From Geosiphon pyriformis uo1 (lineage: Eukaryota; Fungi; Glomeromycota), in contig JAAOMT010000283.1 of the NCBI GenBank assembly GCA_016748015.1, forward strand, positions 314,108-378,107: a stretch of 64,000 nucleotides of DNA. The letters run 5' to 3'. The notes under the pieces were generated by a model. It worked only from the letters and a program-made list of their open reading frames with translations, made no database searches and was not told the DNA's origin. The translations under genes and the position numbers were made by a program. This document shows positions 3,266 to 50,241 of this stretch, in pieces. Each line of letters starts with the position of its first letter. Positions within the stretch are counted from its first letter, which is position 1.

Positions 3266-3297
<32 letters not shown>

Positions 3298-3886: not shown

Positions 3887-3912
3887 GATGACTCTCCTAA
3901 AAGATAAGCTTA

Positions 3913-4071
3913 TTTTTTTTTTGTTAATGTGTAGCCATGCCAGTTGTTTATTAGTTATGTTCACAAAATTGTGGTGCTTTCATAAAGCCAGCTTACCCAA
4001 TAATACAAAAATTACAAGATGTAGTTAATTACAAACAGAGAGTCTTAACTACATACTAGTACTACCTTTGC
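3913..4071 (-). mobile_element. 3'-UTR plus poly(A) fragment of the ORF1-only element (H3)
   Basis: Poly(T)-gttaatgtgtagccatgcc… is the family's 3' end on the minus strand. Confidence 0.8.
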
Positions 4072-7000: not shown

Positions 7001-8965
7001 GTTTCAGTTGCTGCCTAGTTGTATTGGGCTTAAGTCAGTTTCACAAAATACTATTAAATTGTTCTGTGTAGAATTTGCATTTCAAGAGTGTCTAAATAGT
7101 GCCACCAAAGTGGTCATCAGTGATAAAGTTTTTTTGACCACTTTTAAGATTGCACAATTTTCTGGTGTGGTCTCTGTTTCTTTATTTTCCTTGTTAGTTG
7201 TACTGCATGATATACTTTTGGGTACCTCTTCTGATGACATCAAAACTGCTCTTGGCATTTTTGGTGTTGTCACTTCTATGAAGTTGAAGCCTGCAATATG
7301 CTGTGGTTAATTTTAAGGACATTTTTTCTGCTGCTGCTGCTCTCTCTAACTGGTTTGTATTGATCAGAAAAGATAATATTAGGATTTTTCCCATTACCAA
7401 CTAAAAGGAGGTTATCTTCTCAAGAGATATATTCAAAGCTAAGTTGGTCAATTTTCTATTTGGCTGTACTGCCTTTGAGATAAGTAATTTGGTCTTCCAA
7501 GTTGGTAGCCATACATGTTTCATTTCTTGCTCCTCTGAATCTTATCATTATCAATACTTTGCTATGGTTATCTTTGATTCTTTGAAATCTTTAAATGTTG
7601 CTGTGTCAAAAACTGGTACCTTGTATGGTTGTCACATCTGGTGGGAAACTCCTGGATGTTGCTGCTGCTACAAGTGTCAAAACTTGAATTATTTGGCTGT
7701 AGACTGCAAGAAGTTATCTTCTCTTTCAGCCAAACTCTTTTTCACCATCTTTGGTGGCCCCAAAAATCTCAAACCTTCATTTGCTGGATTTAAATTTTAT
7801 GCCAAAGCTGCTGCTTTTGTGGTTTTTTCTGGTGCTGCTGCTGCTGATATGAACTTGGATTTTGGTGGTCTTTCTAAAACTGCAACACTCAAATTGTTTG
7901 CTGTCCCTTTTGTTCCCAATTCTGCTGTTGAATCTAGGTTGGCTTCTTTAGAATCCCATCTTAGTGAACTATCTGTGTTGTTAAAATCTTTAGTTGAACC
8001 TGTTTGTGTTCTAGTTGTATTAGTTACCAAATTGCTGTCTATTTTACCTGCCATGGATGTGTTAATAAGAAAAAGTGTGGCTGAGTTGGCTAAGCAAAAT
8101 AAAGACTTGGCTGTTGTTGCCATCATAATGCAGAAAAAAATAACATGCCTTGAAAAAATATGTGAACGGGTCTGCTTGGAGGATAGATCAGATGGTAATA
8201 ACATGGTTGATGATATTAATGATAATAATAATGAAGATAAAAACTTTTCAGTTTATAATAATACCTTTGATATTATGATGCACTTATGGGAAGATCAGCC
8301 TTCCAGAATCAAATTCAGTCCTAATCAGACTGCTAAGTAGATGAGTGGTATGATTAAAAATAGTTATAAGCTTGTTAGCATTATGAGTAAGATGTATAAA
8401 TTAGATATGTTTAATACATTAGGTAGCAAAGATAGTACTAGTGTATAGTTAGAACTTTCCACTTGTGGTTAACCACATCTTGTAATTTCTGTATTATTGG
8501 GTGAACTGGCTTTGTGAAACCACCACATTACTGTGACTTAACTAATAAACAACCAGCGTGGCTACATGTTAACATAAAAAAAAAAAAAAGTAGTAGTGAA
8601 AGTAGTGAGAGCAGGAAAGACCAAATTGTTGACTGGTCTGTTATTAAAAATTTTTGGGCTTTTTGAAGTGGTAGAGACAACACTAGAACTAACCCAAGTG
8701 TGTCTTTTAAAAAGAACTTTGACTGGAAAAAAACTACCAGCCAAAGGTGAAAAAAATAAACCAGAAGCCACTAAAGGCAGCTTATCACTAATATTTTTTA
8801 AAGGAAATATTGCCAGAACGTTTTGTCTAGCTGCTTCAATAACAGAGAAACTCTCTCATGTTGAAACTTTATTAGTTACTATAGAAAAAGTAACGTTTGC
8901 AACTTTTTTACTCTTAGCTCTATTCATAATTATGAATTTTTAGGAGAGAAAAAGTTTTTTTTTTT
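4072..8965 (-). mobile_element. ORF1-only element H4, split by H5 (pieces 4072-6151 and ~8588-8965)
   Basis: Poly(A) tail at 4072, 5' oligo(A) leader at 8955-8965; the ORF1 pieces rejoin across the H5 TSD. Confidence 0.9.
6152..8587 (+). mobile_element. ORF1-only element H5, nested in H4
   Basis: 5' A-run, ORF1 fragments 6348..7310 and 7444..8340, poly(A). TSD aaatagtagtgggag (6137-6151) / aagtagtagtgaaag (8588-8602). Confidence 0.92.
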
Positions 8966-9633
8966 CTCCTGCTCTTATTTACTGGTCTGTGCTGATTTTG
9001 TTTGTTACATACACTCTATATATATCTACTAAATTCATATGTTGTAACATAGCAACAGTAGGACAAGCTTTGATCTTATTTGTAGCATATGTTTCTTCAA
9101 GTGATTTGGATAACAGGTCTTTATTCAAATCATTTGTAACTATAATTATCTCTTTGTTTTGCACAATGTCTCCCAAAAGTTTCTTGATTTCTTTAGTGAC
9201 TGCTCTCTTAGTAGGCAATTTGAAAGCAAGCATGTACAGTCCTACTATGTGCACATTGATTCTACCTCTAAATTTCAACCCCAAATGTAACAGCCTCCCA
9301 TAATATCCCTTAATTGTTTCTATATGGTGTATCCAACATTTTTTGACCAGTATACCAACACCAGTTCCCATTTGTTTCTCTGTGCTTAACTCCCAAAAGG
9401 CATGATATTCATTAGAGCCAAAAAATACACCTTTTTCTTTTATTGGAGTCATTTTAGTTTCTGTAACAATCATAAAGTCAAATTGTTCCTCAATAACTCA
9501 GCATAGCACCTCTTCAATTTTACCAGGATTATTAAGCCCTCTAACATTAACAGTACCAATTTTCCAAGTGTTGTTATTAAAGTATTTCTGTTCTATATTG
9601 GAATTAAATATGCTACACATTATCTGTTTCCAT
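8966..9633 (-). pseudogene. LINE ORF2 N-terminus: APE-type endonuclease, truncated
   Basis: WKIGTVNVRGLN…IVTETK…GTGVGILV…IVGLYM…IIVTNDLN are canonical L1/APE motifs; there is an in-frame stop and no RT in the window. Confidence 0.88.
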
Positions 9634-10192
9634 AGATTTAGATTCTTCAGCAGTAGAACTGTTCCAGCTACTCTGTTTTTTCATTTGCTTCAATAATTCT
9701 AGAATGGGTTTCAATGTTTTTTTGATTTTTTTGATTTCAAATTTTGGGTTGTATGCCTCTTTTTTTGCTGCTGAAATAGATTTAAATGTATTACTTTAGC
9801 TTGGTAATCTATTCTCCATCTCTTTTTTTTCTTTTAAGGTGTTACTTGGCTGTTAAGTAACTATTACTTCTTTTTTTTCTTTATTGTTACTCCAAGTTTG
9901 GCAGCAACTGCACTCAGCAGTTTTGCTATTTCATCAACCTGCTGTCTCAATTCATTAATTTCAGCCTTCCATGGTTGGTTGACTCTCTTTTTTGATCATT
10001 CTTCTCTATTGTTTACTTGTAGACCAGGTTTCTGAGTACTGTTTGAATTGGTGTTGTTCTAATTATGGGGCAGTCTAAGTGCAGCCATTTCAGCATATGA
10101 TCTTTCACTAAAGGCCTTGATGTTTTCCTTTGGAACATTCTTCTTAACATACAGCTTTGCCAACCTAATATTGTTGGTAACTTTTTTGGTAT

Positions 10193-10898: not shown

Positions 10899-13800
10899 AT
10901 GGGTGATTATTTATACCTGCCACAACAATCAAAAGAACACTTTAAAGCACACAACAAAAATGATCTAGACTTTATTGAACCCAATCCTTTGCCTTTCTGC
11001 TTGATTTGCTTCCCCATTGAAAAACAATCTAGCAGACAATTCCAAGACTTTTGGAACTGGTTCTTGAATGAGCATTCAGCTAAAACCTACACAGCTTATA
11101 CAATTTATTACTTTGACCAAGCTTATTTTGAAGATGACTTTGAAAAAAGCTATTAAACCACTCCTGTTTTTGATCTCTTTTCAAGTGAATCAGGACACTC
11201 CACACAAACAGTTACACCTGAACCAATGGTTCAAGACCCTCTACAACAAAACATTCTGATTGCCCTCCAAGGTATACAGACTGCTTTAAAAAAAAAGTAG
11301 AAATAAACTCTTTCTCTCCTAAATTTCATGACCACAAATAGAGCTAAGAGTAAAAAAGTTGCAAACATTACTTTTCTTATAGTGACTAATAAAGTTTTAA
11401 TACGAGAGGGTCTCTCTGTTATTGAAGCAGCTAGACAAAACATTCTGGCAACATTTCCTTTAAAAATAATAGTAATAAGCTGCCTTTAGCAGCTTCTAGT
11501 TCATTTTCTTCACCTTTGGCTGGTAGTTTTTCTCCAGTCAAAGTTCCTTCAAAAAAACACACTCAAGTTAGTTCCAGTGTTGTCTCCACTACTTTAAAAA
11601 GCCCAAAGATTTTTAATAACAGACTAGTCAACAAGTTGGTCTTTCCTGCTCTCATCACTCCCACTATTACTTCTATTACTACTGCTTTACAAATGGCCGT
11701 GAAAGCAAAAAATTCCAAAAAACAGCAGCAGGCAGTCACAACTGCTATGGTCACACCAAACCCCTTTGTAGTTTCAGATGAGATCTTCAGTAAGATCTCC
11801 ACAGCAGCAGCCAGCCCTCTTCCTGATATGGATGGCAACAGCAGTGGCACATCTCCCAAGATGGGCCAAGATCAACCACTGGCTGTGTTGCTTAATGTGG
11901 TATTTTCCAGCAGATCATCGCCAATTTCAGTAAAAAAACAGTCCATCAATCCAGATGATCTCAAAGATTGGGCTGATCAAATGGAAATGGAATCAACTGT
12001 TCCTTCCCTAGTTTCTGGTGCTGCTGATGGTGATGCTTGGGAAAATGTGAATGGTCATCAGAGGTTCTTTGGTTGGGTGGCCTCCAATCTAGTATCTGGA
12101 GCTACATTCAAGATCAAAATGGCCCTGCTTGGTTCTTTGTTTCAGTTACTGCCTGTTTGTATTGGGCTTAAGTCAGTTTTACGAAATGCTATTAAGTTGT
12201 TCTGTATGGAATTTGCATCTTAGGAGTGTCTAAATAATGCCACCAAAGTGGCCATCAGTGATGAGGTGTTTTTGACCACTCTTAAGATTGCATGGTCTTC
12301 TGGTGTGGCCTCTGTTTCTTCCCCTTCTTTGTCAGTTGCACTGTGCAACATACCTTTGGGTATCTCTTCTGATGACATCAAAACTGCTCTTGGCATTTTT
12401 GGTGTTGTCACTTCTATGAAGTTGAAGCCTGCAATATGCTGTGGTTAATTTTAAGAACATTTCTTCTGCTGCTGCTGCTCTCTCTAACTAGTCTGTATTG
12501 GTCAGAAAAGATAGTGTTAGGATTCTTCCTGTTGCCAACCAAAAGGAGGTTATTTTCTCAAGAAATGTATTCAAAACTAAGTTGGTCAATCTTTCATTTG
12601 GCTGTACTGCCTTTGAGATAAGTAATTTGGTCACCCAAGTTGGTGGCCGTATGTGTTCATTCTTTGCTTCCCTGAATCTTATCGATGTCAACACTTTGCT
12701 GTAATTACCTTTGATTCTTTGGAATCTCTAAATGTTGCTGTGTTAAAAACTGGTACCTTGTGTGGTTGTTGCATTTGGTGGGAAACTCCTGGGTGTTGCT
12801 ACTGTTACAGATGTCAAGACTTGGATCATTTGGCCATGGACTGCAAGAAGTTGCCTCTTTCCACACCCAAACTCTACTTTAATACTTTTGGTGGCCCCAA
12901 AATTTTCAAACCTTCATTTGCTGAATCTAAATTTTATGCCAAAGCTGCTGCTTTTGTGGTTTCTCCTGGTGCTGCTGCTGCTAATATGAACTTGGATCTT
13001 GGTGGTCCTTCCAAAACTACACCACTTATGGTGCCTGCTATATCTTCTGTTTCTAAGTCTGCTGTTGAATCTAGGTTGGCTTCCTTGGAATCCCATCTTA
13101 GTGAACTCTCTGTGTTGATAAAATCCTTAGTTGAATTTGTTGGTGCTCTTGTTACATTGGTTACTAAACTGCTGTCTATTCCAACTGCCATGGATGTGTC
13201 AGTTAAGAAATGTGTGAATGGTTTGGCTAAGCAAAATAAAGGCTTGGCTGTTGTTGTTTCTGTGATGCAGAGAAGCATTACACACCTTGAGAAAAGATGT
13301 AAACAGGCTGGCTTGGAGGATGGATCAGATGTTGATGACATGGTTGATAATAATGATGATGATGATAAAAATTTTTCAGTTTATGATAATACCTTTGATG
13401 TTATGATGTATCTATGAGAAGATTAGCCTTCTAGTATCAAATCCAGTCCTGATCAAACTGCTAAGTGGATGAGTAGTATGGTTAAGAATAGTCATGAGCT
13501 TGTTAGCATTATGGGTAAAATGTATGAATTAGAAATGTTTGATACATTAAGTAGCAAAGGTAGTATTAGCATGTAGTTAGGGCTTTCCACTAAGTAGTTA
13601 GCTGCATCTTGTAAACTTTGTATTATTGGGTAAGCTGGCTTTATGAAAGTGCCAACTTTATTGTTAGACAAAACTAATAAACAATCAGTGTGGCTACATG
13701 TTAACATAAAAAAAAAATACAGACTGCTTTAGGGCGAAGAAACAACACCTCATTACTATTATTCAGAGGTAATGTTCAAGATCCAATTGAATGGTTGGAT

Positions 13801-14754: not shown

Positions 14755-17700
14755 GCACACCTCCAAAGGATGAGAGTGCAAGCCAACCAGAAAAAACCTC
14801 TTTTATGCTTTTAACCTAACTGATGATGATCATGATATAGATAAACTAGCAATCAACATCTCTGAATCAACCAAAAAGAAGAAGAAAGCCAAGGTTGATT
14901 TCGTCTTGGACCCAAACAAAGCATCCAAATCATCTGCTGATAACAATGAGCCACCAAAGGCTAAGGTTTTTAAAAATCCTCCAAAGTTAGAACCCCCAAA
15001 AATTGTACAAAAATCTGGACCCTATTCTGTTGTTAAAGATCTCATGGAAACCCCCAGCACCAACAAATGCCCTCACCAAGCTGGACTTGTTGATAACAGC
15101 AATGTCACCCCTCTGATTTGTAAAGCCCAAGTGGCTGGTTACTTTATTAATCTGATTCTAGATAGTAGATCATCTGTTAGTGTAATTGCCAAACATTTTC
15201 TTGAAGCAATTGGCAGAAAGATTGATGAGCCTTCCACAAGACCAATGACTAATGTACATGGTAACAAGAAGAAAGGCCTGGACATAGCCAAAGCTATTTC
15301 TGTTCGCATCAATGGTATTAGCATTGAAACAGATATGGAAGTATCTGAAACAAAAAAGTACACCATTATTGTTGGTAATGAATGGCTTAAAAAAGCCAAA
15401 GCATTACTTGACTATGAACTTTGTGAGCTAACCATCAGATGTGGTGAGAAACCCATTGTGGTTAAATGCTGACATTAGACAACTCCTCCAGTACCCAAGC
15501 AGAATCAAGAAGAAGAACAATCAGATGAATCAGATAATAATAAGAGCAATAAAAAAGAAGATCAAGAACCAGAAGAAACAAAACAAAAACTCTTTCTCTC
15601 CTAAATTTCATGACCACGAATAGAGCTAAGAGTAAAAAAGTTGCAAATGTTACTTTTCCTATAGTAACTAATAAAGTTTCAACACGAGAGGGTTTTTCTG
15701 TTATTGAAGCAGCTAGACAAAACATTTTGGCAACATTTTTTTTAAAAAATAATAGTAATAAGCTGCCTTTAACGGCTTCTGGTTCATTTTCTTCACTTTT
15801 GGCTGGTAGTTTTTCCTCAGTCAAAGTTTCTTCAAAAAGACACACTTGGGTTAGTCCCAGTGTTGTCTCCACTACTTCAAAAAGCCCAAAGATTTTTAAT
15901 AACAGGCCAGTCAACAAGTTGGTCTTTCCTGCTCTCACCACTCTCACTACTACTTTACAAATGGCCATGAAAGCCAAAAATTCCAAAAAACAGCAGTAGG
16001 CAGTCGCAACTGCTATGGTCACACCAAACTCCTTTGTAGTTCCAGATGAGATCTTTGGTAAGATCTCCACAGCAGCAGCCAGCCCTATTCCTGATATGGA
16101 TGGCAACAGCAGCGGCACATCTCTCAAGATGGGCCAAGATCAACCACTGGCTGTGTTGCCTGATGTGGTACTCTTCGGCAGATTATCACCAATCCTAGTA
16201 ACAAAACAGTCCATCAATCCAGATGATCTCAAAGATTGGGCTGATCAAATGGAAATGGAATCAACTGTCACCCCCCCCCCCAGTTTCTGGTGCATCTGAT
16301 GCTGGTGCTTGGGTGAATGTGAGTGGACGTCAAAGGTTCTCTGGTTGGGTGGCCTCCAATCTTGTACCTGGTACTACGTTTAAGATCAAGATGGCTTTGC
16401 TTAGTTCTTTGTTTCAGTTGCTGCCTGGTTGTATTGGGCTTAAATCTGTTTTACAAGATGCTGTCAAGTTGTTCTGTGTGGAATTTGCATCTCAGGAGTA
16501 TCTAAATGGTGCTACCAAAGTGGCCATTGGTGATGAGGTTTTTTTGACCACTCTTAAGATTGTACAGTCTTTAGGAGTGACCTCTGTTTCTTCCTCTTCT
16601 TTGTCAGTTGCACTGCGTGATGTACCTTTGGGTACCTCTTCTGATAACATTAAATTGGCTCTTGGCATTTTTGGTGTTGTCACTTCTGTTAAGTTGAAGT
16701 CTGCTGGCTTATGGCAATATGCTGTGGTTAACTTTAAGGACATTTTTTCTGCTGCTGCTGCTCTCTCTAACTGGTCTGTGTTGGTCAGAAAAGATAGTGT
16801 TAGGATTTTTCCTATTGCCAACCAAAAGGAGGTTATCTTCTCAAGAGATGCTTTCAAAGCTAAGCTGGTTAATCTTCTATTTGGCTGCACTGCATTTGAG
16901 ATAAGTGATCTGGTCTCCCAAGTTGGTAGCCATACATGCTTTATTCCCCACTTCCCTGATTCTTATCAATGTTAATGCTTTGCTGTGGTCACCTTTGATT
17001 CCTTGGAATCTTTAAATGCTGCTGTTTCAAAAACCAGTACCTTACATGGCTGTTACATCTGGTGGGAAACTCCTGGATGTTGTTGCTGCTATAAATGTCA
17101 AAATTTAGATCATTTGGCTGTGGACTGCAAGGTGTTGTCACCTCTCCCTCCCAAACTCTCTTCTAATTATGCTGGTGGTCCCATCATTTTCAAGTCATCC
17201 CACATTGGAGCTAAATCTTATGCCAAAGCTGCCACCTCTGTGGTTCCTCCTGTTGCTGCTGCTGCTGCTAATACGGGTCTGGCTTTCAGTACCTCTCCCA
17301 AGGTTGTGGTGCTGCTGTTGCCAGTTGCCTCCTCTGGTTTAGATCTTGCTGTTAATGCTAGATTGGCTTCTCTGGAAACCCAACTTAGTAAACTGTCTTT
17401 GTTGATCAAATCTATAGTTGAGCCTGTGGGTTCTTTGGTTGCATTAGTTACTATGTTATTGTCTACTCCACCAGTTATGGCTGAGGCAATGAAGAAAAGT
17501 GTGATCGGATTGGGAAACCAAATTAAGGCTGTTCATGCTGTGGCTTCTGTGCTGCAAAAAGAAGTGAGGGCCCTCAAGTTGAGGAGTAGGAAAGTACAAT
17601 ATAACATATCTGATGATAAAAACATGGATGATGATGATAATAATAATGATGATGATGATGGTGATGCTAAAGATTTTTTGGTCTATGATGATATATTTGA

Positions 17701-20700
17701 TGCGATGATGGAGTTATGAGATGTTCAATCCTCTAATATCAACTCTGATCCAGATCAGACGGCTAAGTGGATGAGCAGTCTTGTTAAGAATAGTCATGAA
17801 CTGGTATGTATTATGGGTAAAATGTATGAATTAGATATGTTTAATACATTAGGTAGCAAAGGTAGTACTAGCATATAGTTAGGGCTTTCCATTTGTGATT
17901 AACCACATCTTGTAATATGTATTATTGGGTGAGCTGGCTTTATGAAACCACCACATTACTGTGGACTAACTAATAAACAACTGGTGTGGCTACACGTTAA
18001 CAAAAAAAAAAAAAAAAAAAACAGAAGAAACTGCTGAACTCACTTATACCATCTTCACCAGCAATAACAAGCCACTGGACAATGTTAAAGCTGACAAAAA
18101 AGGAATTATGGTAAATGGCAAACTGGTCTGCTGGCCCTACTATGATATTCTCAGAAGAATCTTTGACAAAAAACCTAGCAAAAAAGCAAAATACAGTTAT
18201 TGATGACATGGCCCTTGTGCATGGTGCTGGTGTAATAAACTTTTGTATTCACCAAGTGATGAATGCAAATCCTGCCTAATCTACTACAAAAATTGGAAAC
18301 CAATTAGCTTGATACCTTGAGAATGAACCACCTAAAATCCAATTACTAGTTGTAAAACAAAGAGAACCTTCTCTTGAAGAAAGAAAAATGGACATTGAAA
18401 ATATGTTGGCTAGAAATAGCCCAGTTATCTCAAAAGAAGATGATGCCCCTGGACAAACCCATGTGATACAACACACCATCACTACCAAAGAAACTCACCC
18501 CATCTATTTGAAGCCTTATCAATCCAATTGACACAATGATGAGTTTATTAAGAAAGAAATAAACCAGATAAAAGATCTTGGATTCATACAAGAAACCAAG
18601 AGTGAATGGGATTTCTCAATTGTAGTGGTATCCAAGAAAGATGGAACCCTATGCTTCTGTGTTGACTACTGCCAATTAAATAGCCACTTCCCAAAATTGA
18701 TGCAATGCTAGATAAATTCAATGGTGCTGCTTTCTTCTCAACCATTGATTTAACTGCTGGATTCTGGCAAGTAGAGATGGATCCAGAAAGCAGAAAGAAA
18801 ACTGCCTTTATTACCAAGTATGGCACCTATGAATTCACAGTCATGCCTTTTGGTCTCACCAATGCTCCTCTCATCTTTCAACGCCTAATGGATAAAGTGT
18901 TTGAATCAGTAAAAGAAAACTTTGTTCTGGTTTACTTGGACGACATAATAGTATATTCAAAAACCTGGGATGAACACCTTGAACATTTACAGAAGGTTTT
19001 TGACCTGCTAAAAAATGCTGGCCTTAAGATCAACCCAATCAAATCTTTTTTTGGACGCCAATCCATTCAATTCCTTGGTCATTTTATTACAAAAGATGGA
19101 ATCTTTCCTGACCCAGCTAAAGTTAAAAAAGTTCAAAACATTAGACAACCAATGAATGTTTCTGAACTACATTTTTTTCTTGGTTTGGTCTCTTACTATT
19201 GCAAATTTATCAAGGATTTCTTCAAAATTGCCTTTTTCCTCAATCAGCTACTCAAGAAAAATGTCAATTATTACTGGGGCACTCATTAACAAAAAGCTTT
19301 TGAATTTTTGAAGGAAAAACTTGTTACTGAACCAATTCTCAAACAACCAAATCTGGACCAATCTTTTATTCTCCACACTGATGCATCTGGCTATAGACTT
19401 GGTACTGTCCTTTTACAAAAAGATGAAAATGGCAGAGAACATGCCATAGCATATGCCAGTAGATCCCTTACACCAGCAGAAAAGAACTAATTAGTTACTA
19501 AACAAGAATGTTTAGCAGTAGTTTGGGCTACCAACTACTGGGATCAATATCTTCTTGGTGCAAAATTCTTAGTGGTAATAGATCATCAAGCCTTGGTTTG
19601 GCTGTACAATAAAAAGAAGCTAGAACACAAAAGAATAACTTGCTAGATACTTCACTTGGATGAATTCGACTATGATATTCAACACTACAAAGGAACAAAT
19701 CATCAAAATGCTGATGCTCTATCTAGACTTACCATCCAGTGACAGTACAACCTCTTAAACCAAACCAACTTAATTATTAGTAACTCCTTTACAAACAAAC
19801 ATGATAATGGACTTGGACAACGACTCTGCCTTAATGGAATTTTTGGGTAAAGAACAATACTTACTGGAATACACTCGACAGCAAAGAGAACATTTGCACA
19901 AACAATCAAATTTCTATTTGATTCACCAGAACCAGCTATATAAAAGAAATAGAAAAGACCCTGACCGCCCCCAGAGAGTCATCAGATTTGAAGAAAGAGA
20001 AATTGTAATATACAACATGCACACTGATCCATTAGCTAAACACTTTGGAAAAACAAAGACATTCAGAAAACTTTAGCTTACTATTATTGGCCTATCTTGA
20101 GAAAAGACATTGCTAAATACACCAAAACCTGTAACATCTGCCAAAGAAGAGGCAAACCCAATCACAAAGAAGATATCCATCCAATCTCTATTAGTCAACC
20201 ATTTGACAGAATTGGTATAGATGTTGTTGGACTTTTAACAATAACTCCTGATGGCAACAGATATATTATCACAGCTACCAACTATCTTACAAAGTAAGTA
20301 GAAGCAAGAGCCACCTCAGACCAAACAGCAGTCTCAATAGCCAATTTTATTTATGAAGATATCATCTGCCATTATGGCTGCCCCAAAGAACTTTTATCTG
20401 ATAGAGGAAAAGCTTTTCTCAGTACACTGGTTGAAGAACTTTGTAGAAAAATGGGAATACATCATAAACTTTCCTCCCCTTATCACCCCTAAACAAATGG
20501 TCTAGTAGAACGTTTCAATAGAACACTGTGTGAAACCCTAGCCAAAACCAGTGAAAAAACAAACTTATGAGACAAAGTACTGACTTCAGCTTTGTTTGCT
20601 TATAAAACTGTAAATTATGACATAACAAGTTATGAACCTTTTTATCTGTTCTATGGATGCATGGCAATACTACCAATAGAAACTGATATTAAAACAATAC

Positions 20701-22395: not shown

Positions 22396-22399
22396 GTAT

Positions 22400-24084
22400 C
22401 TTCTTCTTTTTTTTTATGCAGGGTTGGACATTTTGAGACCAAATGTCCCATCTGATAACAGAAGTGGTACTCTTTAGCATCAGTAGGCACCCAGTGGACC
22501 AGTGTGTCACCAATTACCAAGGGCTTTTTGGTGGCATTGTTGCAGCTAGCTTTACTGTTAAATCTTATATAAGCACAGCCCATCCTTGTATAATTTTTGC
22601 TAGTTTTTGGAATGAAGCAAGATCAGGCTTTGATTTGATCCAGAGTGGTGCTCAAGTAGTGAGCAGTACAGTTTTGTGGTAGGCCCACCAATTTAGCTTC
22701 CCAGGCTTTTCTCTGCTTAATGATCTTTTGAGTTCCAATCATTGGGTAAATTCTGACTACATCTTTTCTGACCATGGTCAACCATTGGTTTACAGCTCTG
22801 GTTGTTGTTATATTCAATCACTGCTGATTGCCATTTGCCAGCTACTTTGATTTGGATTTTTTTGACTTTTCCAAATTTTTTTATGGCAGCTCTCACCTCT
22901 TTGTCTGAGATGCCCAAGGGGATATCTCTTACCAGGACTTTTCTTTGACCAGCCATTTGGTTGTTGACACCATCAGTAGCCATCAAAAATGATTCTATTT
23001 CTTTATTTGCCAGGATTTCTCTGGCTTGGTCTCTTCCAGCCACTTGGGAAAAATCAACTCTGATTTCTTGGTTTCTAGTTATTACAGCTCCCAAGAGGTA
23101 ACTAACATCTTCCAAGAGATTATAAATCCACCCCACTTTCTTTTCCATGATTTTTTTTGGTATGTCCAATGCTTGCACAAAAAGTACATGCCTCTTGGTC
23201 CCATGGACTACTGTTCTTCAGCCTTTTTCATGGTTTGCTTCCACAAGCATGGGTTTTTTGCCAAGTAATTTACTACTGTATTGTTCTGGACTTGGACTAG
23301 CCATTCTGCTTGATAGGCTTAATTCAGAGTCTTTTATGTCTTCTACAGCATTATTCAGATTAGACTTATCTTTGTTTGTGTCAAATGGATTGTCCATTTG
23401 CTTTTTATTCTCTATCACAAAATTTCTTCTGTTGATCTTGTCCAAAATATCAGAATTGCATTTTCTCAAAGCCACTTCTATTTGTGCAGCTCTTTCCCTG
23501 TCTTCTTTAGGTGTTTTGGATGGTTTATCTATTTTTCTCAGGGACTTTAAGACTCCCTTTTCACTAGTCTAAGCTTCTATTTGAAATTTGTTGCTGTTTC
23601 CACTTTTGTTAAACATTAGTTGCAAGACAAAGCTATTGGTTTAAACAGATGTGTTTTTAGGTAGGTCTTCTTTAGTTATTTGATTGAATTTCTCAGTTAG
23701 CCCTTTTACACTAATTCTTTCAATGTGTCTGTATTTTTTGTTGGCCTTTTTCTCTAATCTGTTAGCTGTTATTGGAGAAAAGTCTGTCACTCTCCTATGT
23801 AGAGCTGTTTTTTTCGATGTGTTGGCTATTCTAAAGGGTGTATTGTCTCCACTACTTGTGTTCACACTTCCAAATAGTCTATTGGTAGTTTCAAATCTAA
23901 ATGGAAGTGTAATAGGTCTTGTAGTTTCTACAGTTGTTGAATTCCATGGATTAGTGTTAATGTTTTCTCTTTCAACAGTGGAAGTTATGTTTCCCTCTAC
24001 TTGGTATTCACTGTCAATAGTCTCTACACTTGTACTTCTTTGCCTGACTGGTGTCACTTTACTGTTAACATTGTTATTAGACAC
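22400..24084 (-). pseudogene. LINE ORF1 (RRMs and CCHC), fragmented; C-terminus continues at ~9700-10192
   Basis: ORFs 23641..24084, 23218..23475, 22717..23178, 22623..22817 and 22269..22583 form one collinear protein. Confidence 0.82.
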
Positions 24085-24215
24085 TTTTAAGTCTGTTGTG
24101 ATAATAATAATAATTTATTATAATTAAAGGTTTCTTTGCAAAAACTTATTTTTCAAATTTGAGGCATAGTAAATTGTGTGGTAGCAGTCAAAGAGAGAAA
24201 AAAAGTTTTTTTTTT

Positions 24216-27198: not shown

Positions 27199-27522
27199 TT
27201 TTTTTTTTGTTAACGTGTAGCCATGCCGGTTATTTATTAGTTATTCCACAGTAATGTGGCAGTTTCATAAAGCCAGCTCACCCAATATTACATATTACAA
27301 GATGCAGCTAACCACAAGTGGAAAGCCCTAACTACACACTAGTACTACCTTTGCTATCTTACCCATAATGCATACAAGTTTGTGACTACTCTTAACAAGA
27401 CTGCTCATCCACTTAGCAGTCTGATCTGGATCGGACTTGATATTAAAGGATTGAACCTCTCATAACTCCATCATCACATCAAATATATCATCATAGACTG
27501 AAAAATCTTTAGCATCACCATT

Positions 27523-27554
<32 letters not shown>

Positions 27555-29609
27555 TGTCTTTATTATCAGATATGTTATATTGTACCTTCCTACTTCTCAA
27601 CTTGAGGGCCTCCACTTCCTTTTGCAGCACAGAAGCCACAGCACAAACAGCCTTAATTTGGTTTCCCAATCCAATCACACTTTTCTTCATTGCCTCAGCC
27701 ATAACTGGTGGAGTAGACAATAACGTAGTAACTAATGCAACCAAAGAACCCACAGGCTCAACTATAGATTTAATCAACAAAGACAGTTCACTAAGTTGGG
27801 TTTCCAGAGAAGCCAATCTAGAATTAACAGCAACATCTAAACCAGAAAAGGCAACCAGCAACAGCGGCACCACAATCTTGGGGGAGGTACTGAAAGCCAG
27901 ACCCGTATCAGCAGCAGCAGCAACAGGAGGAACCACAGAAGTGGCAGCTTTGGCATAAGATTTAGCTCCAACGTGGGATGACTTGAAAATGATGGGACCA
28001 CCAGCATAATTAGAAGAGAGTTTGGGAGAGAGAGGTGGCAACACCTTGCAGTCCACAGCCAAATGATCTAAACTTTGACATCTATAGCAGCGACGACATC
28101 CAAGAGTTTCCCACCAGATGCAGCAGCCACGTAAGGTACTGGTTTTTGAAACAGCAGCATTCAAAGATTCCAAGGAACCAAAAATCACTACTGCAAAGTG
28201 TTGACGTCGATAGGAATCAGGGGAGTGGGGAATGAAACACGTACAGCCACCAACTTGGGAGACCAGATCACTTATCTCAAAAGCAGTGCAGCCAAATGGA
28301 AAATTAACCAGCTTAGCTTTGAAAGCATCTCTTGAAGAAATAATTTCCTTTTGGTTGGCAATGGGAAGAATCCTAACACTATTTTTTCTGACCAACACAG
28401 ACCAGTTAGAGAGAGCAGCAGCAGCAGAAGAAGTGTCCTTAAAGTTAACCACAGCATATTGCCATAAGCCAGCAGGCTTCAATTTAACAGAAGTGACAAC
28501 ACCAAAAATGCCAAGAGCAGATTTGATGTCATCAGAAGAGGCACCCAAGGGTACATTGCGCAGTGCAACTGACAAAGAAGGAGAAGAAACAGAGGCCACT
28601 CCTGAAGACCGTGCAATCTTAAGAGTGGTCAAAAAAACCTCATCACCAATGGCCACCTTGGTAGCACCATTTAGACACTCCTGAGATGCAAATTCCACAC
28701 AGAACAACTTGACAGCATCTTGTGAAACCGATTTAAGCCCAATACAACCAGGCAGCAACTGAAACAAAGAACTAAGCAAAGCCATCTTGATCTTAAACAT
28801 AGCACTAGGTACAAGATTGGAGGCCACCCAACCAGAGAATCTTTGATGTCCATTCACATTCACCCAAGCACCAGCATCAGATGCACCAGAAACTGGGAGG
28901 GGAACAGTTGATTCCATTTCCATCTGATCAGCCCAATCTTTGAGATCATCTGGATCAATGGACTGTTTTGCTACTGGGATTGGCGATGATCTGCCAGAGA
29001 GTACCACATCAGGCAACACAGCCAGTGGTTGATCTTGGCCCATCTTGGGAGATGTGCCGCTGCTGTTGCCATCCATATCAGGAATAGGGCTGGCTGCTGC
29101 TGTGGAGATCTTACTAAAGATCTCATCTGGAACCACAAAGGGGTTTGGTGTGACCATAGTAGTTGCAACTATCTGCTGCTGTTTTTTGGAATTTTTTGCT
29201 TTTGCAGCCATTTGTGAAGCAGTAGTAGTAGAAGTAGTAGTAGTGGGAGTGGTAAAAGCAGGAAAGACCAATTTGTTGACTGGTTTGTTATTAAAAATCT
29301 TTGGGCTCTTTGAAGTGGTAGAGACAACACTAGGACTAACCCGAGTGTGCCTTTTTGAAGGGACTTTGACTGGAGAAGAACTTCCAGCCAAAGGAGAAAA
29401 AAATGAACCAGAAGCTGCTAAAGACAGCTTATTACTATTATTTTTTAAAGGAAATGTTGCCAGAATGTTTTGTCTAGCTGCTTCAATAACAGAGAGACCC
29501 TCTTGTGTTGAAACTTTATTAGTTAGTATAGGAAAAGTAACGTTTGCAACTTTTTTACTCTTAACTCTATTCGTGGTCATGAAATTTAGGAGAGAAAGAG
29601 TTGTTTTTT
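27199..29609 (-). mobile_element. ORF1-only element H8 (best preserved; flanks do not form a TSD)
   Basis: Poly(A) at 27199, 5' leader at 29581-29609, near-complete ORF. Confidence 0.95.
27460..29580 (-). CDS. L1-type ORF1 protein of H8, 706 aa from MTTNR (premature TGG>TGA stop ~45 codons before the family C-terminus)
   Basis: S/T/P-rich N-terminus; RRM-like repeats (SVALRNVPLG…LWQYAVVNF; KAKLVNFPFG…FAVVIF); CYRCQSLDHLAVDC knuckle; KSYAKAA motif; heptad region RLASLETQLSELSLLI; poly-Asp. Confidence 0.85.
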
Positions 29610-35871: not shown

Positions 35872-36208
35872 GTACTAGTCTTTGAACTTGCACTTTTTTC
35901 TTTGCTACAATTTGGGTGAACTAAAGATACATTTTGGCAAACTACAAGTTATTTTACTGAACTATTTGATTATTTTGGCCAATTTCTATTAATTTCAGTG
36001 AATTTTGACTATGATAAATGGTTTAGGGTATTATGTAATTTGATCATCTTAATTTCTAGAGTACAAATCAGATTATTGATTGAGCAATAATATTTGATAA
36101 TTTGATTAACTAATAAGTGATAATCAAAATAATAATAATATATACTAATTAATAATAGGAATTATAAGAGTAATTTCATGCTAATTAATAGCTAAATTCT
36201 ACTGGTAA

Positions 36209-38618
36209 AAAACTCTTTCTCTCCTAATTTTCATGACCACGAATAGAGCTAAAAGTAAAAAAGTTGCAAACGTTACTTTTCCTATAGTAACTAATAAAGT
36301 TTCAACATGAGAGGGTCTCTCTGTTATTGAAGCAGCTAGACAAAACGTTCTGACAACATTTCCTTTAAAAAATAATAGTAATAAGCTGCCTTTAGCAGCT
36401 TCTGGTTCATTTTCTTCTTCTTTGGCTGTAAGTTCTTTTCCAGTCAAAGTCCCTTCAAAAAGGCACACTTGGGTTAGTCCTAGTGTTGTCTCTACTACTT
36501 CAAAGAGCCCAAAGATTTTTAATAACAGACCAGTCAACAAGTTGGTCTTTCCTGCTCTCACCACTGCCACTACTACTTTTACTACTACTGCTTCACAAAT
36601 GGCCGCAAAAGCAAAAAATCCCAAAAAACAACAGCAGGCAGTCACAACTGCTATGGTCACACCGAACCCCTTTGTGGTTCCAGATGAGATCTTCAGTAAG
36701 ATTTCCACAGTAGCAGCCAGCCCTATTCCTGATATGAATGGCAAGTTGGGCCAAGATTACCCATTGGCTGTGTTGCCTGATGTGGTACTCTCCAGCAGAT
36801 CATTGCCAATCCCAGTAGCAAAACAGTCCATCAATCCAGATAATCTCAAAGATTGGGCTGATCAGATAGAAATGGAATCAACTGTTCCCCCCCCAGTTTC
36901 TGGTGCATCTGATGCTGGTGCTTGGGAGAATGTGAATGGGCGTCAAAGGTTTTCTGGTTGGGTGGCCTCTAATCTTGTACCTGGTGCTACATTTAAGATT
37001 AAGATGGCTTTGCTCAGTTCTTTGTTTCAGTTGCTGCCTGGTTGTATTGGGCTTAAATCTGTTTCATGAGATGCTGTCAAGTTGTTCTGTATGAAATTTG
37101 CATCTCAGGAGTGTCTAAATAGTGCCACCAAAGTGGCCATCAGTGATGAGGTTTTTTTGACCACTCTTAAGATTGCACGGTCTTCAGGAGTGGCCTCTGT
37201 TTCTTCCCCTTCTTTGTCAGTTGCATTGTGCGATGTACCCTTGGGTGCCTCTTCTGATGACATCAAATCTGCTCTTGGCATTTTTGGTGTTGTCACTTCT
37301 GTTAAGTTGAAGCCTGCTGGCTTATGGCAATATGCTGTAGTTAACTTTAAGAACATTTTTTCTGCTGCTGCTGCTCTCTCTAACTGGTCTGTGTTGGTTA
37401 GAAAAGATAGTGTTAGGATTTTTCCCATTGCCAACCAAAAGGAGGTTATCTCCTCAAGAGACGCTTTCAAAGCTAAGCTGGTTAATCTTTCATTTGGCTG
37501 CACTGCATTTGAGATAAGTGATCTGGTCTCCCAAGTTGGTGGCCGTATGTGCTTCATTCCCCGCTCCCCTGATTCCTATCAACGTCAACACTTTGCAGTG
37601 GTAACTTTTGGCTCCTTGGAATTTTTGAATGCTGCTGTTTCAAAAACCAGTACCTTACGTGGCTGCCGCATCTGGTGGAAAACTCCTGGATGTTATCACT
37701 GCTATAGATGTCAAAGTTTAGATCATTTGGCTGTGGACTGCAAGGTGTTGCCACCTCTTCCTCCCAAACTCTCTTCTAATTCTGCTGGTGGTCCCATCTT
37801 TTTCAAGTTGTTGTCCCTCATTGGAGCTAAATCCTATGCCAAAGCTGCCACTTCTGTGGTTTCTCCTGTTGCTGCTGCTGCTGATACAGGTCTGGCTTTT
37901 AGTACCTCCCCCAAAGTTGTGGTGCCGCTGTTGCTGGTTGCCTTCTCTGGTTCAGATGTTGCTGTTAATGCTAGATTGGCTTCTCTGGAAACCCAACTTA
38001 GTGAACTGTCTTTGTTGATCAAATCTATAGTTGAGTCTGTGGGTTCTTTAGTTGCATTGGTTACTACGTTATTGTCTACTTCACCAGTTATGGCTGAGGC
38101 AATGAAGGAAAGTGTGATTGGATTGGGAAACCAAATTAAAACTGTTCATGTTGTGGCTTCAGTACTACAAAAGGAAGTGGGGGCCCTCAAGTTAAGGAGT
38201 GGGAAGGTACACTATAACATATCTGATGATGAAAACATAGATGATGATGATGATAATGATGATGATGGTGATGCTAAAGATTTTTCAGTCTATGATGATA
38301 CATTTGATGTGATGATGGAGTTATGGGAGATTCAATCCTCTAATATCAAGTCCGATCCAGATCAGACTGCTAAGTGGATGAGCAGTCTTGTTAAGAGTAG
38401 TCATGAACTTGTATGTATTATGGGTAAGATGTATGAATTAGATATGTTTAATACATTAGGTAGCAAAGGTAGTACTAGCATGTAGTTAGGGCTTTCCACT
38501 TGTGGTTAGCTGCATCTTGTAATATGTATTATTGGGTGAACTGGCTTTATAAAACTGCCACATTACTGTGGAATAACTAATAAATAACTGGCATGGCTAC
38601 ACATTAACAAAAAAAAAA
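36209..38618 (+). mobile_element. ORF1-only element H9
   Basis: TSD tctactggtaa (36198-36208 / 38619-38629); poly(A). Confidence 0.95.
36233..38485 (+). pseudogene. Full-length ORF1 frame of H9 (751 codons, two internal TGA from CGA)
   Basis: ATG at 36233 is in frame with 36422..37069 and 37082..38485; ends …MFNTLGSKGSTSM-stop, which defines the family C-terminus. Confidence 0.85.
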
Positions 38619-42739: not shown

Positions 42740-43095
42740 TTTTTTTTTTTTTTGTTAACGTGTAGTCACGCCGGTTGTTTATTAGTTATTTTACAGTAAT
42801 GTGGCAGTTTCATAAAGCCAGTTCACCCAATAATACATATTACAAGATGTGGCTAACCACAAGCAGAAAGCCCTAATTACACACTAGTACTACTTTTGCT
42901 ACTTAATGTATTAAACATATCTAATTCATACATCTTACCCATAATGCATACAAGTTCATGACTACTCTTAACAAAACTGCTCATCCACTTAACAGTCTGA
43001 TCTGGATTGGACTTGATATTAGAGGATTGAACCTCCCATAACTCTATTATTGCATCAAATGTATCATCATAGACTGAAAAATCTTTAGCATCACT

Positions 43096-43130
<35 letters not shown>

Positions 43131-45159
43131 TGTCTTCATTATCAGATATGTTATAGTGTACCTTCCCACTCCTCAACTTGAAGGCCCCCACTTCCTTTTG
43201 CAGTACTGAAGCCACAGCATGAACAGCTTTAATTTGGTTTCCCAATCCAATCATACTTTCCCTTATTGCCTCTGCCATAACTGGTGGAGTAGACAATAAC
43301 ATAGTAACCAATGCAACTAAAAAACCCACAGGCTCAATTATAGATTTGATCAACAAAGACAGTTCACTAAGTTGGGTTTCCAGAGAAGCCAATCTAGCAT
43401 TAACAGCAACATCTGAACCAGAGGAGGCAACCAGCAACAGCAGCACCACAACTTTGGGGGAAATACTGAAAGCCAGACCTGTATCAGCAGCAGCAGCAAC
43501 AGGAGGAACCACAGAAGTGGCAGCTTTGGCATAGGATTTAGCTCCAATGAGGGATAACTTGAAAATAATGGGACCACCAGCATAATTAGAAGAGAGTTTG
43601 GGAGAGAAAGGTGGCAACACCTTGCAGTCCACAGCCAAATAATCTAAACTTTAACATCTATAGCAGCGACAACATCCAGAAGTTTCCCACCAGATGCGGC
43701 AGCCACGTAAGGTACTGGTTTTTGAAACAGCAGCATTCAAAGATTCCAAAGAGCCAAAGGTCATCACTGCAAAGCGTTAACATTGATAGGAATCAGGGGA
43801 GCAGGGAATGAAACATGTACAGCCACCAACTTGAGAGACCAGATCACTTATTTCAAATGCAGTGCAGCCAAATGGAAAGCATCTCTTGAGGAGATAACCT
43901 CCTTTTGGTTGGCAATGGGAAAAATCCTAACACTATCTTTTCTGACCAACACAGACCAGTTAGAGAGAGCAGCAGCAGCAGAAAAAATGTCCTTAAAGTT
44001 AACCACAGCATATTGCCATAAGCCAGCAGGCTTCAACTTAACAGAAGTGACAACACCAAAAATGCCAAGAGCAGATTTGATGTTATCAGAAGAGGCACCC
44101 AAGGGTACATCATGCAGTACAACTGACAAAAAAGGGGAAGAAACAGAGGCCACTTCTGAAGACCATGCAATCTTAAGAGTGGTCAAAAAAACCTCATCAC
44201 CAATGGCCACTTTGGTAGCACCATTTAGACACTCCTGAGATGCAAATTCTACACAGAACAACTTGACAGCATCTTATGAAACAGATTTAAGCCCAATACA
44301 ACCAGACAGCAACTGAAACAAAGAACTGAGCAAAGCCATCTTGATCTTAAACGTAGCACCAGGTACAAGATTGGAGGCCACCCAATCAGAGAACCTTTGA
44401 CGTCCACTCACATTCACCCAAGCACCAGCATCAGATGCACCAGAAACTGGGGGGGAAACAGTTGATTCCATTTCCATCTGATCAACCCAATCTTTAAGAT
44501 CATCTGAATTGATGGACTGTTTTGCTACTGGGATTGGTGATGATCTGCCAGAGAGTACCACATCAGGCAACACGGCCAGTGATTGATCTTGGCCCATCTT
44601 GGAAGATGTGCTGCTGCTGTTGCCATCCATATCAGGAATAGGGCTGGCTGCTGCTGTGGAGATCTTACCAAAGATCTCATCTGGAACCACAAAGGGGTTT
44701 GGTGTGACCATAGCAGTTGTGACTGTCTGCTGCTGTTTTTTGGGATTTTTTGCTTTTGCAGCCATTTGTGAAGCAGTAGTAGTAAAAGTAGTAGTGGGAG
44801 TAGTGAGAGCAGAAAAGACCAACTTGTTGACTGGTCTGTTATTAAAAATCTTTGGGCTCTTTGAAGTGGTAGAGACAACACTAGGACTAACCTGAGTGTG
44901 CTTTTTTGAAGGGACTTTGACTGGAAAAGAACTTTCAGCCAAAGGAGAAAAAAATGAACCAGAAGCTGCCTTTAGCAGCTTATTACTATTATTTTTAAAG
45001 AAAATGTTGCCAGAACGTTTTGTCTAGCTGCTTCAATAACAGAGAGACCCTCTCGCATTGAAACTTTATTAGTTACTATAGGAAAAGTAACATTTGCAAC
45101 TTTTTTACTCTTAGCTCTATTCATGGTCATGAAATTTAGGAGAGAAAGAGTTTTTTTTT
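42740..45159 (-). mobile_element. ORF1-only element H10 in pol of A6
   Basis: Perfect 17-bp TSD gtggatacatgtctctt (42723-42739 / 45160-45176). Confidence 0.96.
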
Positions 45160-48100: not shown

Positions 48101-48991
48101 GTTGTTTTCAAAATAAGCTTGGTCAAAATAATAGATTGTATAAGTTGTGTAGGTTTTAGCTGAATGCTTGTTCAGGAACCAGTTCTAAAAGTCTTGGAAT
48201 TGTCTGCTGGATTGTTCTTCAATGAGTTCAATAAAGTCTAGATCATTTTTGTTGTGTGCTTTAAAGTGTTCTTTTAATTGTTGTGGCAGGTATGAATAAT
48301 CACCCATACAAATAGAAAACAAAGTGAATTTTGACAACCTCATAGAGAGCACCACTTTTATGTTACGGGTTGGAGTAATAAGCTAATGGATAACAAGAGA
48401 GAACAGGATTGTAGGGTAATGAAAATAATCAAAGAGAATTAAACTTCAAAGAGCAAATTCAATAAGTATAAATTCAATGTGTGAGATCAGTCTTATAAAA
48501 TATCTCAGTTGCTATATTTTTCAAAGATAACCAGAAAATCTGAAGGTAGAGGGATAGTCCATACTGTCAACAAATAATCACACTTGGTATAATTCTATGC
48601 CTCACGTCAGTGCTCTTAGAATTCAATATCAAGTATCAGATGTGCTCTTCAGTCACATTTTATTTAATAATCTTCAAATTTTGCAATTACACAGTTCAGG
48701 AAAAGGGTAAGAAATAACCAACAAGTAATCTTTTATCTTTAAGATGTTCAGATACTTGAAAGTAGGAAAAGGGAAATTAGTGATAAAAGAGAGATTAAGA
48801 TGAAAGTTGTTATTTTATTTATTTTATTTCTTTGATTTCTTTATGTTTTTCTACAGTTAAGAGATTCATTGCTTATATAGCTATCAAAAGTGGTCAATGA
48901 TCATTTACTAAAAATAGAGTGGCTAATTTATATGACATCAGTGGCTAATACATGTGATAATTAATAAGAAGTATAAGTTTCAACCGTAACA

Positions 48992-50241
48992 ATAGGAAGG
49001 ATCCTAACACTATCTTTTCTGACCAATACAGACCAGTTAGAGAGAGCAGCAGCAGCAAAAGAAATGTCCTTAAATTTAACCACAGCATATTGCCATAAAC
49101 CAGCAGGCTTTAATTTAACAAAAGTGACAACACCAAAAATGCCAAGAGCAGTTTTGATGTCATCAGAAAAGGTACTTAAAAGTACATTACACAATGCAAC
49201 TGACAAGGAAGAGGAAGACACAGAGACCACACCAGAAGACTGTGCAATCTTAAGAGTGATCTAAAAAACTTCATCACTGATGGCCACTTTGGTGGCACTA
49301 TTTAGACTCTTCTGAGATGCGAATTCCACACAGAACAACTTTACAGCATCTTGTGAAACTGTCTTTAGCCCAATACAACCAGGCAGCAACTGAAACAAAG
49401 AACCAAGCAGGGACATTTTGATCTTAAACATAGCACCAGATACAAGATTGGAGGCCACCCAACCAGAGAACTTTTGACGTCCATTCACATTCACCCAAGC
49501 ACTAGCATCAGATGCACCAGAAACTGGGGGGGAAACAGTTGATTCCATTTCCATCTGATCAGCACAATCTTTGAAATCATCTGGATTGATGGACTGTTTT
49601 GCTTCTGGGATTGGCAATGATCTGCTGGAGAGTACCACATCAGGCAACACAACTAGTGGTTAATCTTGGCTTATCTTGGGAGATGTGCCACTGCTGTTGC
49701 CATCCATATCAGGAATAGGGCTGGCTGCTGTTGTGGAGATCTTACTGAAGATCTCATTTGGAACCACAAAGAGGTTTGGTGTGACCATAGCAGTTGTGAC
49801 TGCCTGCTGCTGTTTTTTGGAATTTTTTGCTTTTGCAGCCATTTGTGAAGCAGTAATAGTAATAGTAGTAGTGGAAGTGATAAGAGTAGAAAAAACCAAC
49901 TTGTTGACTGGTCTGTTATTAAAAATTTTTGGGCTTTTTGAAATAGTGAAAACAACACTGGGACTAACCCAAGTGTGTTTTTTTGAAGGAACTTTGACTG
50001 GAGAAGAACTTCCAGCCAAAGATAAAAAAAATGAACCAAAAGCTGCTAAAGACAGCTTATTACTAGTATTTTTTAAAGGAAATGTTGCCAGAACGTTTTG
50101 TCTAGCTGCTTTAATAACAAAGAGACCCTTTTATGTTGAAACTTTATTAGTTACTATAGGAAAAGCAACATTTACAACTTTTTTACTCTTAGCTCTATTT
50201 GTGGTCATGAAATTTAGGAGAAAAAAAAGTTTTTTTTTTTT
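48992..50241 (-). mobile_element. ORF1-only element H11, 5' half (3' cut by the A6 LTR), inserted in LINE L2
   Basis: 5' A12 leader at 50230-50241; ORFs 49660..50019, 49261..49650 and 48961..49230. Confidence 0.9.

Follow-up and report, generated by a model that had tools for sequence, protein, structure and literature searches.

How can a DNA unit that encodes an RNA-binding protein but neither an endonuclease nor a reverse transcriptase (RT) spread through a fungal genome? The question is raised by a 64,000-nt stretch of the genome of Geosiphon pyriformis (Glomeromycotina), here called the window (C660:314108-378107; assembly of 128.3 Mb in 792 contigs), in which a unit of about 2.4 kb, termed HAL-A, is repeated many times. 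The unit contains a single open reading frame (ORF) of the type found as the first ORF (ORF1) of long interspersed nuclear elements (LINEs). We analyzed HAL-A starting from one copy, c6. The answer that we favor, with a probability of about 0.8, is that HAL-A is a non-autonomous non-LTR (long terminal repeat) retrotransposon whose sole encoded product is an RNA-binding protein of ORF1 type and which was mobilized by a resident LINE, termed LINE-A.

The layout of the unit given in a preliminary description of the locus, namely an oligo(A) leader, a 5' untranslated region (UTR) of ~20 nt, a single ORF, an AATAAA signal and poly(A), was borne out in the sequence of c6 (Table 1). Two lengths had to be corrected: the ORF encodes 706 aa in c6 and not ~750 aa, and the 3' UTR measures 251 nt in HAL-A, the ~130 nt proposed earlier fitting the ~135 nt of a sister family, HAL-B. 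Only these 251 nt separate the stop codon from the poly(A), which leaves no room for endonuclease or RT, as had been claimed.

The 11 large copies reported earlier for the window were recovered by blastn of the unit, at 72-91% identity, and seven of them are essentially full length with common ends. Target-site duplications were found in 11 of the 14 copies checked, in the window and for five copies from other contigs, where they are 12-17 bp long. In the window, clear duplications of 9-17 bp flank four copies and two more copies have old, imperfect ones of ~20-23 bp; duplications of 10-17 bp had been attributed to seven copies. Copy c6 itself has none. Combined with the poly(A), duplications of variable length agree with the proposed signature of target-primed reverse transcription. 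The canonical 5' end of several copies is preceded by 7-19 additional bases, which separate it from the duplication. The 3' flank of c6 is a site in a Gypsy RT gene (YPLP motif) that was entered at the same nucleotide in c8 (junctions 27199 and 42744), and its 5' flank is a different Gypsy copy in inverted orientation; the junction could be due to a rearrangement at insertion. We rejected the idea that c6 and c8 derive from one duplicated insertion: the Gypsy flanks are 87% and the elements 93% identical, and because the flanks are less alike than the elements, c6 and c8 are two separate insertions at one site.

The ORF begins with a disordered third rich in Ser, Thr and Pro, followed by two RRMs, a CCHC zinc knuckle, long C-terminal helices and a poly-Asp tail. 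Pfam recognized RRM_1 twice and zf-CCHC below its cut-off, and did not recognize Transposase_22 (PF02994); the knuckle is conserved in HAL-B and in the ORF1 of LINE-A. In the AlphaFold model (mean predicted local distance difference test score, pLDDT, of 44.8) RRM1 alone is confident, the N-terminal 260 residues are predicted to be disordered and the two long C-terminal helices would form a possible oligomerization module. A profile search of PDB sequences with the ORF found nothing. A CCHC knuckle directly preceded by at least one RRM defines the Type I ORF1 protein (ORF1p), which occurs in the clades I, Jockey, R1, Tad1, L2 and plant L1 (PMC4120745). This is the arrangement of HAL-A, in which RRM2 ends at ~aa 500 and the knuckle spans aa 497-512. 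The earlier assignment to the L1 clade from RRM plus CCHC was thus too narrow, the layout being Type I and not specific to L1 (PMC4120745).

Copies made of ORF1, AATAAA and poly(A) might also derive from transcripts of a full LINE that were polyadenylated too early or truncated at the 3' end, and form no separate family; such products are known for LINEs. We located 22 loci bearing an AP endonuclease (APE), a sample of those in the genome, and compared them with the HAL-A ORF. At 20 of the 22, the stretch just upstream of the endonuclease was 24-35% identical to residues ~325-640 of the HAL-A ORF, and at none was an ORF1 closer to HAL-A than this. The remaining two (L028, L030) gave no match to the ORF and are therefore also without a HAL-type ORF1. 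Judged from these alignments the HAL-A ORF is homologous to the ORF1s of true LINEs. Its nearest relatives outside this genome come from metagenomes; downstream of them lie either RT and RNase H genes or a second ORF that overlaps. A LINE with the ORF1 of HAL-A itself was absent from the 22 loci, and the continuation of ORF1 into APE-RT that the preliminary description had put forward as a counter-case was seen neither there nor in the sampled HAL-A copies; ~33 of 40 copies scored genome-wide extend to the common 3' end. In addition, the unit ends in the terminal 155 nt of a LINE, which premature polyadenylation cannot supply, and several waves of copies carry fixed differences shaped by selection. 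We regard an origin by premature polyadenylation as extremely improbable. Two annotated proteins were considered as ORF1-RT fusions and rejected: in P0121 (1,376 aa) a 5'-truncated LINE of another family has been annotated together with the adjoining ORF1-only unit, which is complete and has its tail, and P0149 (1,845 aa) is a similar patchwork of adjacent elements.

A second counter-case was a host parent gene containing introns, of which the HAL-A copies would be processed pseudogenes; a domesticated ORF1-like RNA-binding protein such as L1TD1 could be such a parent. If under selection, it would also yield waves with synonymous-biased fixed differences. In a search that was not exhaustive, no intron-bearing parent locus was seen among ~80 scored HAL copies, all of which are colinear. 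Both ends of the unit match a LINE; a host gene would not have such ends. Furthermore, HAL-A occurs in hundreds of copies and has a sister family, with recombinants between the two. On these grounds we hold the pseudogene explanation to be very improbable. Within the limits of the sampling, the results support the interpretation first given to HAL-A, that of an ORF1-only, non-autonomous parasite of a LINE.

Which LINE could have mobilized HAL-A? The best endonuclease matches map no more than a few kb away from HAL-A copies, and LINE-A was defined with C490 as reference. It is 7.43 kb long, with a 5' UTR of ~100 nt, an ORF1 of ~765 codons (RRM-RRM-CCHC core), an ORF2 of ~1,560 codons (Exo_endo_phos, RVT_1, RNase_H) and a 3' UTR of ~400 nt followed by poly(A), and has its own 12-bp target-site duplication (e.g. 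GTCAGTATGTGC). The domain order APE-RT-RNase H is established; an atlas search with LINE-A gave no clade. Over its last ~155 nt LINE-A matches the HAL-A tail at 77-80% identity in every copy, invariant blocks and AATAAA included, and no nucleotide match between HAL-A and LINE-A was found outside the tail. Both elements start with oligo(A), CT and a pyrimidine tract. Of 21 contigs with scored HAL-A copies, 13 also hold scored LINE-A copies, the assembly having 792 contigs in all. From these features, LINE-A is likely to be the helper of HAL-A. Some loci looked like head-to-tail insertions of LINE-A behind the HAL-A poly(A); this reading was dropped, since the flanks at L023, the only such locus with both flanks readable in a choice of loci biased towards HAL-A/LINE-A neighbors, show that HAL-A was inserted into an existing LINE-A.

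HAL-A was amplified in several waves, with a young wave of 92-94% pairwise identity. Among 18 copies the pairwise ratio of nonsynonymous to synonymous substitution (dN/dS) was 0.51. This value was rejected as a sign of purifying selection as shifted frames gave 0.53 and 0.57; pairwise divergence is therefore mostly neutral decay. The transition/transversion ratio is 3.9 because of CpG decay: at 29 recognizable ancestral CpG columns of the alignment CG was kept by 25% of copies and replaced by TG or CA in 71%, and in the window CpG observed/expected is 0.09, an extreme depletion. This CpG loss fits heavy cytosine methylation of repeats. With such depletion and such a transition excess a naive dN/dS is misleading. 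Singleton and shared variants of the HAL-A copies showed no difference. The differences fixed between the young and an older wave were distributed otherwise: the 74 sites comprise 41 nonsynonymous and 33 synonymous changes in frame, compared to 49:18 and 57:10 in the shifted frames (Fisher test on pooled counts, p=4.5e-4). Per site, the middle of the 3' UTR had 0.125 fixed differences, the ORF 0.035 and the tail 0.027, and HAL-A and HAL-B differ at 0.35, 0.27 and 0.46 of first, second and third codon positions, respectively. We read these patterns as showing that the ORF and the tail were under constraint as long as the lineage spread and that each copy decays freely after insertion.

The numbers of elements were compared with probes of equal length for HAL-A and for ORF2 of LINE-A; the first-look candidates so obtained are not copy numbers. 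The whole HAL-A unit gave 1,096 candidates genome-wide, the HAL-A tail alone 281 and ORF2 of LINE-A 153. From the 1,096 and 281 it follows that real HAL-A copies number a few hundred to about a thousand. The excess over the helper, put at ~5:1 before, is ~11:2 in the window and ~7:1 genome-wide. The identity ranges of HAL-A and LINE-A are similar, and by this measure the two are of similar age.

A LINE far commoner than LINE-A is also present. First-look candidates for the RT-RNase H part of LINE-C (L029-type; C710:495000-504999) number 8,547, among them several whose frames stay open for ~1,300-1,600 aa without a stop, and LINE-C is possibly the currently active LINE of the genome. The helper of an ORF1-only HAL-A might then be LINE-C or another common LINE that recognizes poly(A), the common tail being an ancestral relic. 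Such a helper would fit the lack of an intact LINE-A among the copies examined and the finding that the HAL-A ORF1 is about equally distant from the ORF1 of LINE-A and those of other LINEs. It would leave aside that the tail is the sole nucleotide-level likeness of HAL-A to any sampled LINE, that this tail evolves about four times slower than the adjacent 3' UTR in the propagating lineage, and that HAL-A shares islands with LINE-A while HAL-B, which has another tail, is dispersed in AT-rich DNA. We therefore consider a helper other than LINE-A unlikely.

Several observations nevertheless weigh against the explanation that we favor. The common 5' motif is of low complexity and may match by chance, and the tail likeness could result from descent and not from current recognition. 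RNAalifold folded the tail into a branched structure with a covariation term of -2.4 kcal/mol, a weak support because most of the variation is CpG decay. The HAL-A ORF and the ORF1 of LINE-A are only ~34% identical, in the core only; HAL-A therefore did not arise from LINE-A by a simple, recent deletion. The neutral pairwise decay counts here as well, the evidence for selection comes from the 74 fixed differences, and the copies among which no run into APE-RT was seen are a sample and not an exhaustive set. Stops or frameshifts are carried by 19 of the 20 HAL-A copies examined and by each of the five LINE-A copies that were inspected completely or for the most part; one open HAL-A copy in 20 is about the chance expectation. 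The closest pair of HAL-A copies is only 94.4% identical and there is therefore no sign of recent activity. HAL-A appears to be no longer active, and the present activity implied by the preliminary description is unsupported.

Mobilization by LINE-A could have proceeded as follows. Transcription of HAL-A would start at the element's 5' end, with its oligo(A) and pyrimidine tract, and the transcript would be polyadenylated after AATAAA and then translated. The HAL-A protein would coat its own RNA, and the resulting ribonucleoprotein would recruit the APE-RT-RNase H protein of LINE-A through the common structured tail of ~155 nt, the poly(A) or both. The LINE-A protein would insert the HAL-A RNA by target-primed reverse transcription and so produce the 9-17-bp duplications. 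We infer the mobilization in trans by the ORF2 protein (ORF2p) of LINE-A, the role of the tail and the action in cis of the HAL-A ORF1 protein.

The sister family was reached through proteins of ~700 aa at 45-53% identity to the HAL-A ORF. HAL-B is 2.28 kb long, has a 5' leader (ACTCTTTGTCTCC...ATG) as in HAL-A and an ORF of 701-708 codons that is homologous to the HAL-A ORF over its full length (~52% identical), and its 3' UTR of ~135 nt, followed by poly(A), is unlike that of HAL-A. HAL-B loci (L040:2789-5067 on C659, L041 and L042) are dispersed in very AT-rich DNA; 1,549 first-look candidates were obtained, and 39 of 40 scored copies were full length. As to a partner LINE, the HAL-B tail gave a single weak match among the loci compared, and low-complexity, AT-rich DNA obscures where the L029-type LINE ends on its 3' side. 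It is possible, if rather doubtful, that HAL-A and HAL-B represent one old self-sustaining half-LINE lineage that kept its own ORF1 and 5' end and swapped tails and ORF segments by recombination. If so, tail exchange would open access to different LINE partners and genomic niches, namely LINE-A and the Gypsy islands for HAL-A and AT-rich DNA for HAL-B, and ORF1-only elements would be a stable evolutionary strategy and not short-lived deletion products. One mosaic copy was observed (L043, C656:1163500-1171500, reverse strand 1861-4166): its first 257 aa match HAL-A at 73% identity, the remainder matches HAL-B at 79% and the tail is that of HAL-B, which suggests recombination between the two families. 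The NCBI gene model G9A89_012446 joins this copy to an adjoining truncated LINE.

The window has a G+C content of 35% and consists almost wholly of Ty3/Gypsy fragments and the HAL-A unit, the HAL-A copies together making up ~40%. A 250-aa ORF with no Pfam match is repeated in the Gypsy copies of the window (31664-32416, 39668-40420, 41722-42474). On nine contigs (C615, C594, C733, C647, C699, C702, C710, C607 and C660) HAL-A, LINE-A and one Gypsy family are clustered, in densely nested blocks that span tens of kb and mostly number one or two to a contig; the blocks could be centromere-like islands of transposable elements. The 3' tail module is also found alone, as 5'-truncated solo copies. 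Solo or internally rejoined tails begin at unit position ~2251-2255 at window 3913-4072, L034:928-1090 and L025:4716-4876, and at ~2295 at window 60555-60676. Four copies (c1 of the window and copies on C699, C594 and C710) break at unit positions 2247-2254: the tail-module border is a recurrent breakpoint.

A protein search with the HAL-A ORF gave 266 matches, the best 120 of which are all 'hypothetical proteins' of G. pyriformis. At least 266 annotated 'hypothetical proteins' of this species are copies or fragments of HAL ORFs, and chimeric models include P0121, P0149 and P0153. The published gene count of G. pyriformis is inflated by such copies, and HAL-A and HAL-B help to account for the repeat load of the genome.

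Table 1. Positions in the window of the parts of HAL-A copy c6, of the other HAL-A copies and of LINE-A sequences.
Feature	Position	Strand	Basis or remark
Copy c6 of the ORF1-only unit HAL-A, 2,411 nt	27199..29609	-	sequence, blastn; essentially full length; sole open frame among 20 copies
c6, 5' oligo(A) leader AAAAAACAA	29601..29609	-	in every copy, 5-9 A; inside target-site duplications
c6, 5' UTR CTCTTTCTCTCCTAAATTTC, 20 nt, pyrimidine-rich	29581..29600	-	resembles LINE-A 5' end A(n)CTTTTTTTCTCTCTTTGA
c6, ORF, 706 codons + stop	27460..29580	-	ATG at 29580, stop 27460-27462
c6, RRM 1, aa 336-397	28390..28575	-	Pfam RRM_1 3e-10; confident part of AlphaFold model, pLDDT ~90
c6, RRM 2, ~aa 417-500	28081..28332	-	second Pfam RRM_1 stretch; model; alignment to LINE-A ORF1
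c6, CCHC zinc knuckle CYRCQSLDHLAVDC, aa 497-512	28045..28092	-	Pfam zf-CCHC E=1e-3, 19.6 bits, below 20.8-bit cut-off
c6, two long C-terminal helices (predicted), aa 583-671	27568..27834	-	AlphaFold model, pLDDT 50-70 only
c6, 3' UTR, 251 nt	27209..27459	-	sequence
c6, 3' tail module, unit positions 2255-2401	27209..27355	-	77-80% identity to LINE-A 3' end
c6, AATAAA polyadenylation signal, ~25 nt before poly(A)	27233..27238	-	invariant in 23/23 aligned HAL-A and LINE-A tails
c6, poly(A), 10 nt	27199..27208	-	sequence
c1, oldest copy (72% identity)	1263..3452	+	interrupted at unit position 2254 by LTR-like sequence (TGTTGTTACTAG...)
Solo 3' tail, unit 2255-2411, own poly(A)	3913..4072	-	directly after c2 poly(A)
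c2, 3' part, unit 369-2411	4073..6146	-	blastn; split by nested copy c3
c2, 5' part, unit 1-374	8589..8963	-	blastn
c3, full copy inside c2	6157..8583	+	blastn; essentially full length
c4, target-site duplication ATACAGACTGCTTTA (15 bp)	11306..13715	+	essentially full length
c5, target-site duplication CAGAAGAAAC (10 bp)	15581..18011	+	essentially full length
c7, target-site duplication TCTACTGGT(AA) (9-11 bp)	36207..38618	+	essentially full length
c8, target-site duplication AAGAGACATGTATCCAC (17 bp)	42744..45159	-	essentially full length; Gypsy RT site identical to that of c6
c9, 5' half only	48990..50238	-	blastn
c10, old, imperfect ~23-bp target-site duplication	55393..57754	-	essentially full length
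c11, 113-nt insert at 60566-60678	59386..61958	-	
LINE-A 5' 1.8 kb, 5' end and degraded ORF1	22396..24213	-	continues at 8998-10192
LINE-A continuation, same copy, reference 2616-3810	8998..10192	-	12 kb of nested insertions between
Second, older LINE-A 5' fragment, 74% identity	50279..52469	-	

The ORF1-only parasitic strategy is already known from HAL1, TRE5-A.2 and HeT-A; here it appears in a new lineage. HAL1 of mammals is presented in a passage of PMC5753468 as a non-autonomous LINE derivative that encodes ORF1p only, carries a poly(A) tail and relies on the ORF2p of the LINE for its amplification in trans; the same passage, citing Smit 1999 and Bao & Jurka 2010, states that HAL1s arose several times. 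HAL-A is likewise ORF1-only and poly(A)-tailed. However, the ORF1p of HAL1 is Type II (coiled coil, RRM and C-terminal domain; Transposase_22) whereas that of HAL-A is Type I (RRM-RRM-CCHC) and its host a fungus; its candidate helper has the architecture APE-RT-RNase H, and HAL-A shares with it ~34% identity in ORF1 and a specific 155-nt tail. As ORF1 type, host and helper architecture differ, HAL-A is not HAL1 proper; by this comparison it would work like HAL1 without being a member.

TRE5-A.2 of Dictyostelium discoideum has an ORF1, no ORF2 and the terminal modules of the autonomous TRE5-A.1; it moves in trans with roughly the efficiency of its parent, and its 3' C-module is essential (PMC5391098). 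Its mobilization in trans has been demonstrated experimentally, whereas HAL-A is known from its sequence; TRE5-A.2 is also a recent deletion derivative that keeps the ORF1 of its parent and targets tRNA genes, whereas the ORF1 of HAL-A is deeply diverged and no tRNA targeting by HAL-A was seen. HeT-A, at the telomeres of Drosophila, encodes only a Gag/ORF1 protein of a Type I-like kind, obtains RT from TART/TAHRE and is a long-lived lineage (PMC5537684). It is telomere-specific and serves its host, in contrast to HAL-A, which lies with target-site duplications in Gypsy/LINE islands and for which no host role is shown. In SINE-LINE pairs (short and long interspersed nuclear elements) with 'stringent' recognition, the non-autonomous partner bears the 3' terminal sequence of the LINE (PMC5786205), but SINEs are short, non-coding and transcribed by RNA polymerase III, whereas HAL-A is 2.4 kb long, protein-coding and provided with AATAAA.

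The nearest case described in fungi is the EKA family (AVRk1/AVRa10) of Blumeria graminis, with more than 1,350 members derived from a LINE ORF1 (PMC4641428). EKA members are described as effectors recruited from degenerate or truncated LINE copies, whereas HAL-A is a self-contained element whose 5' and 3' ends are defined and whose copies mostly bear target-site duplications. We found no description in the literature of a self-contained ORF1-only element in fungi, and a recent survey of the transposable elements of Glomeromycotina contains no mention of ORF1 (PMC11952901). What sets HAL-A apart from the textbook cases is the combination of an ORF1 deeply diverged from that of its likely helper (~34%), a conserved common tail and two large families with different tails. 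HAL-A and HAL-B offer a natural case for the study of how the RT of a LINE recognizes a common 3' tail and for the question of why a parasite keeps its own ORF1.

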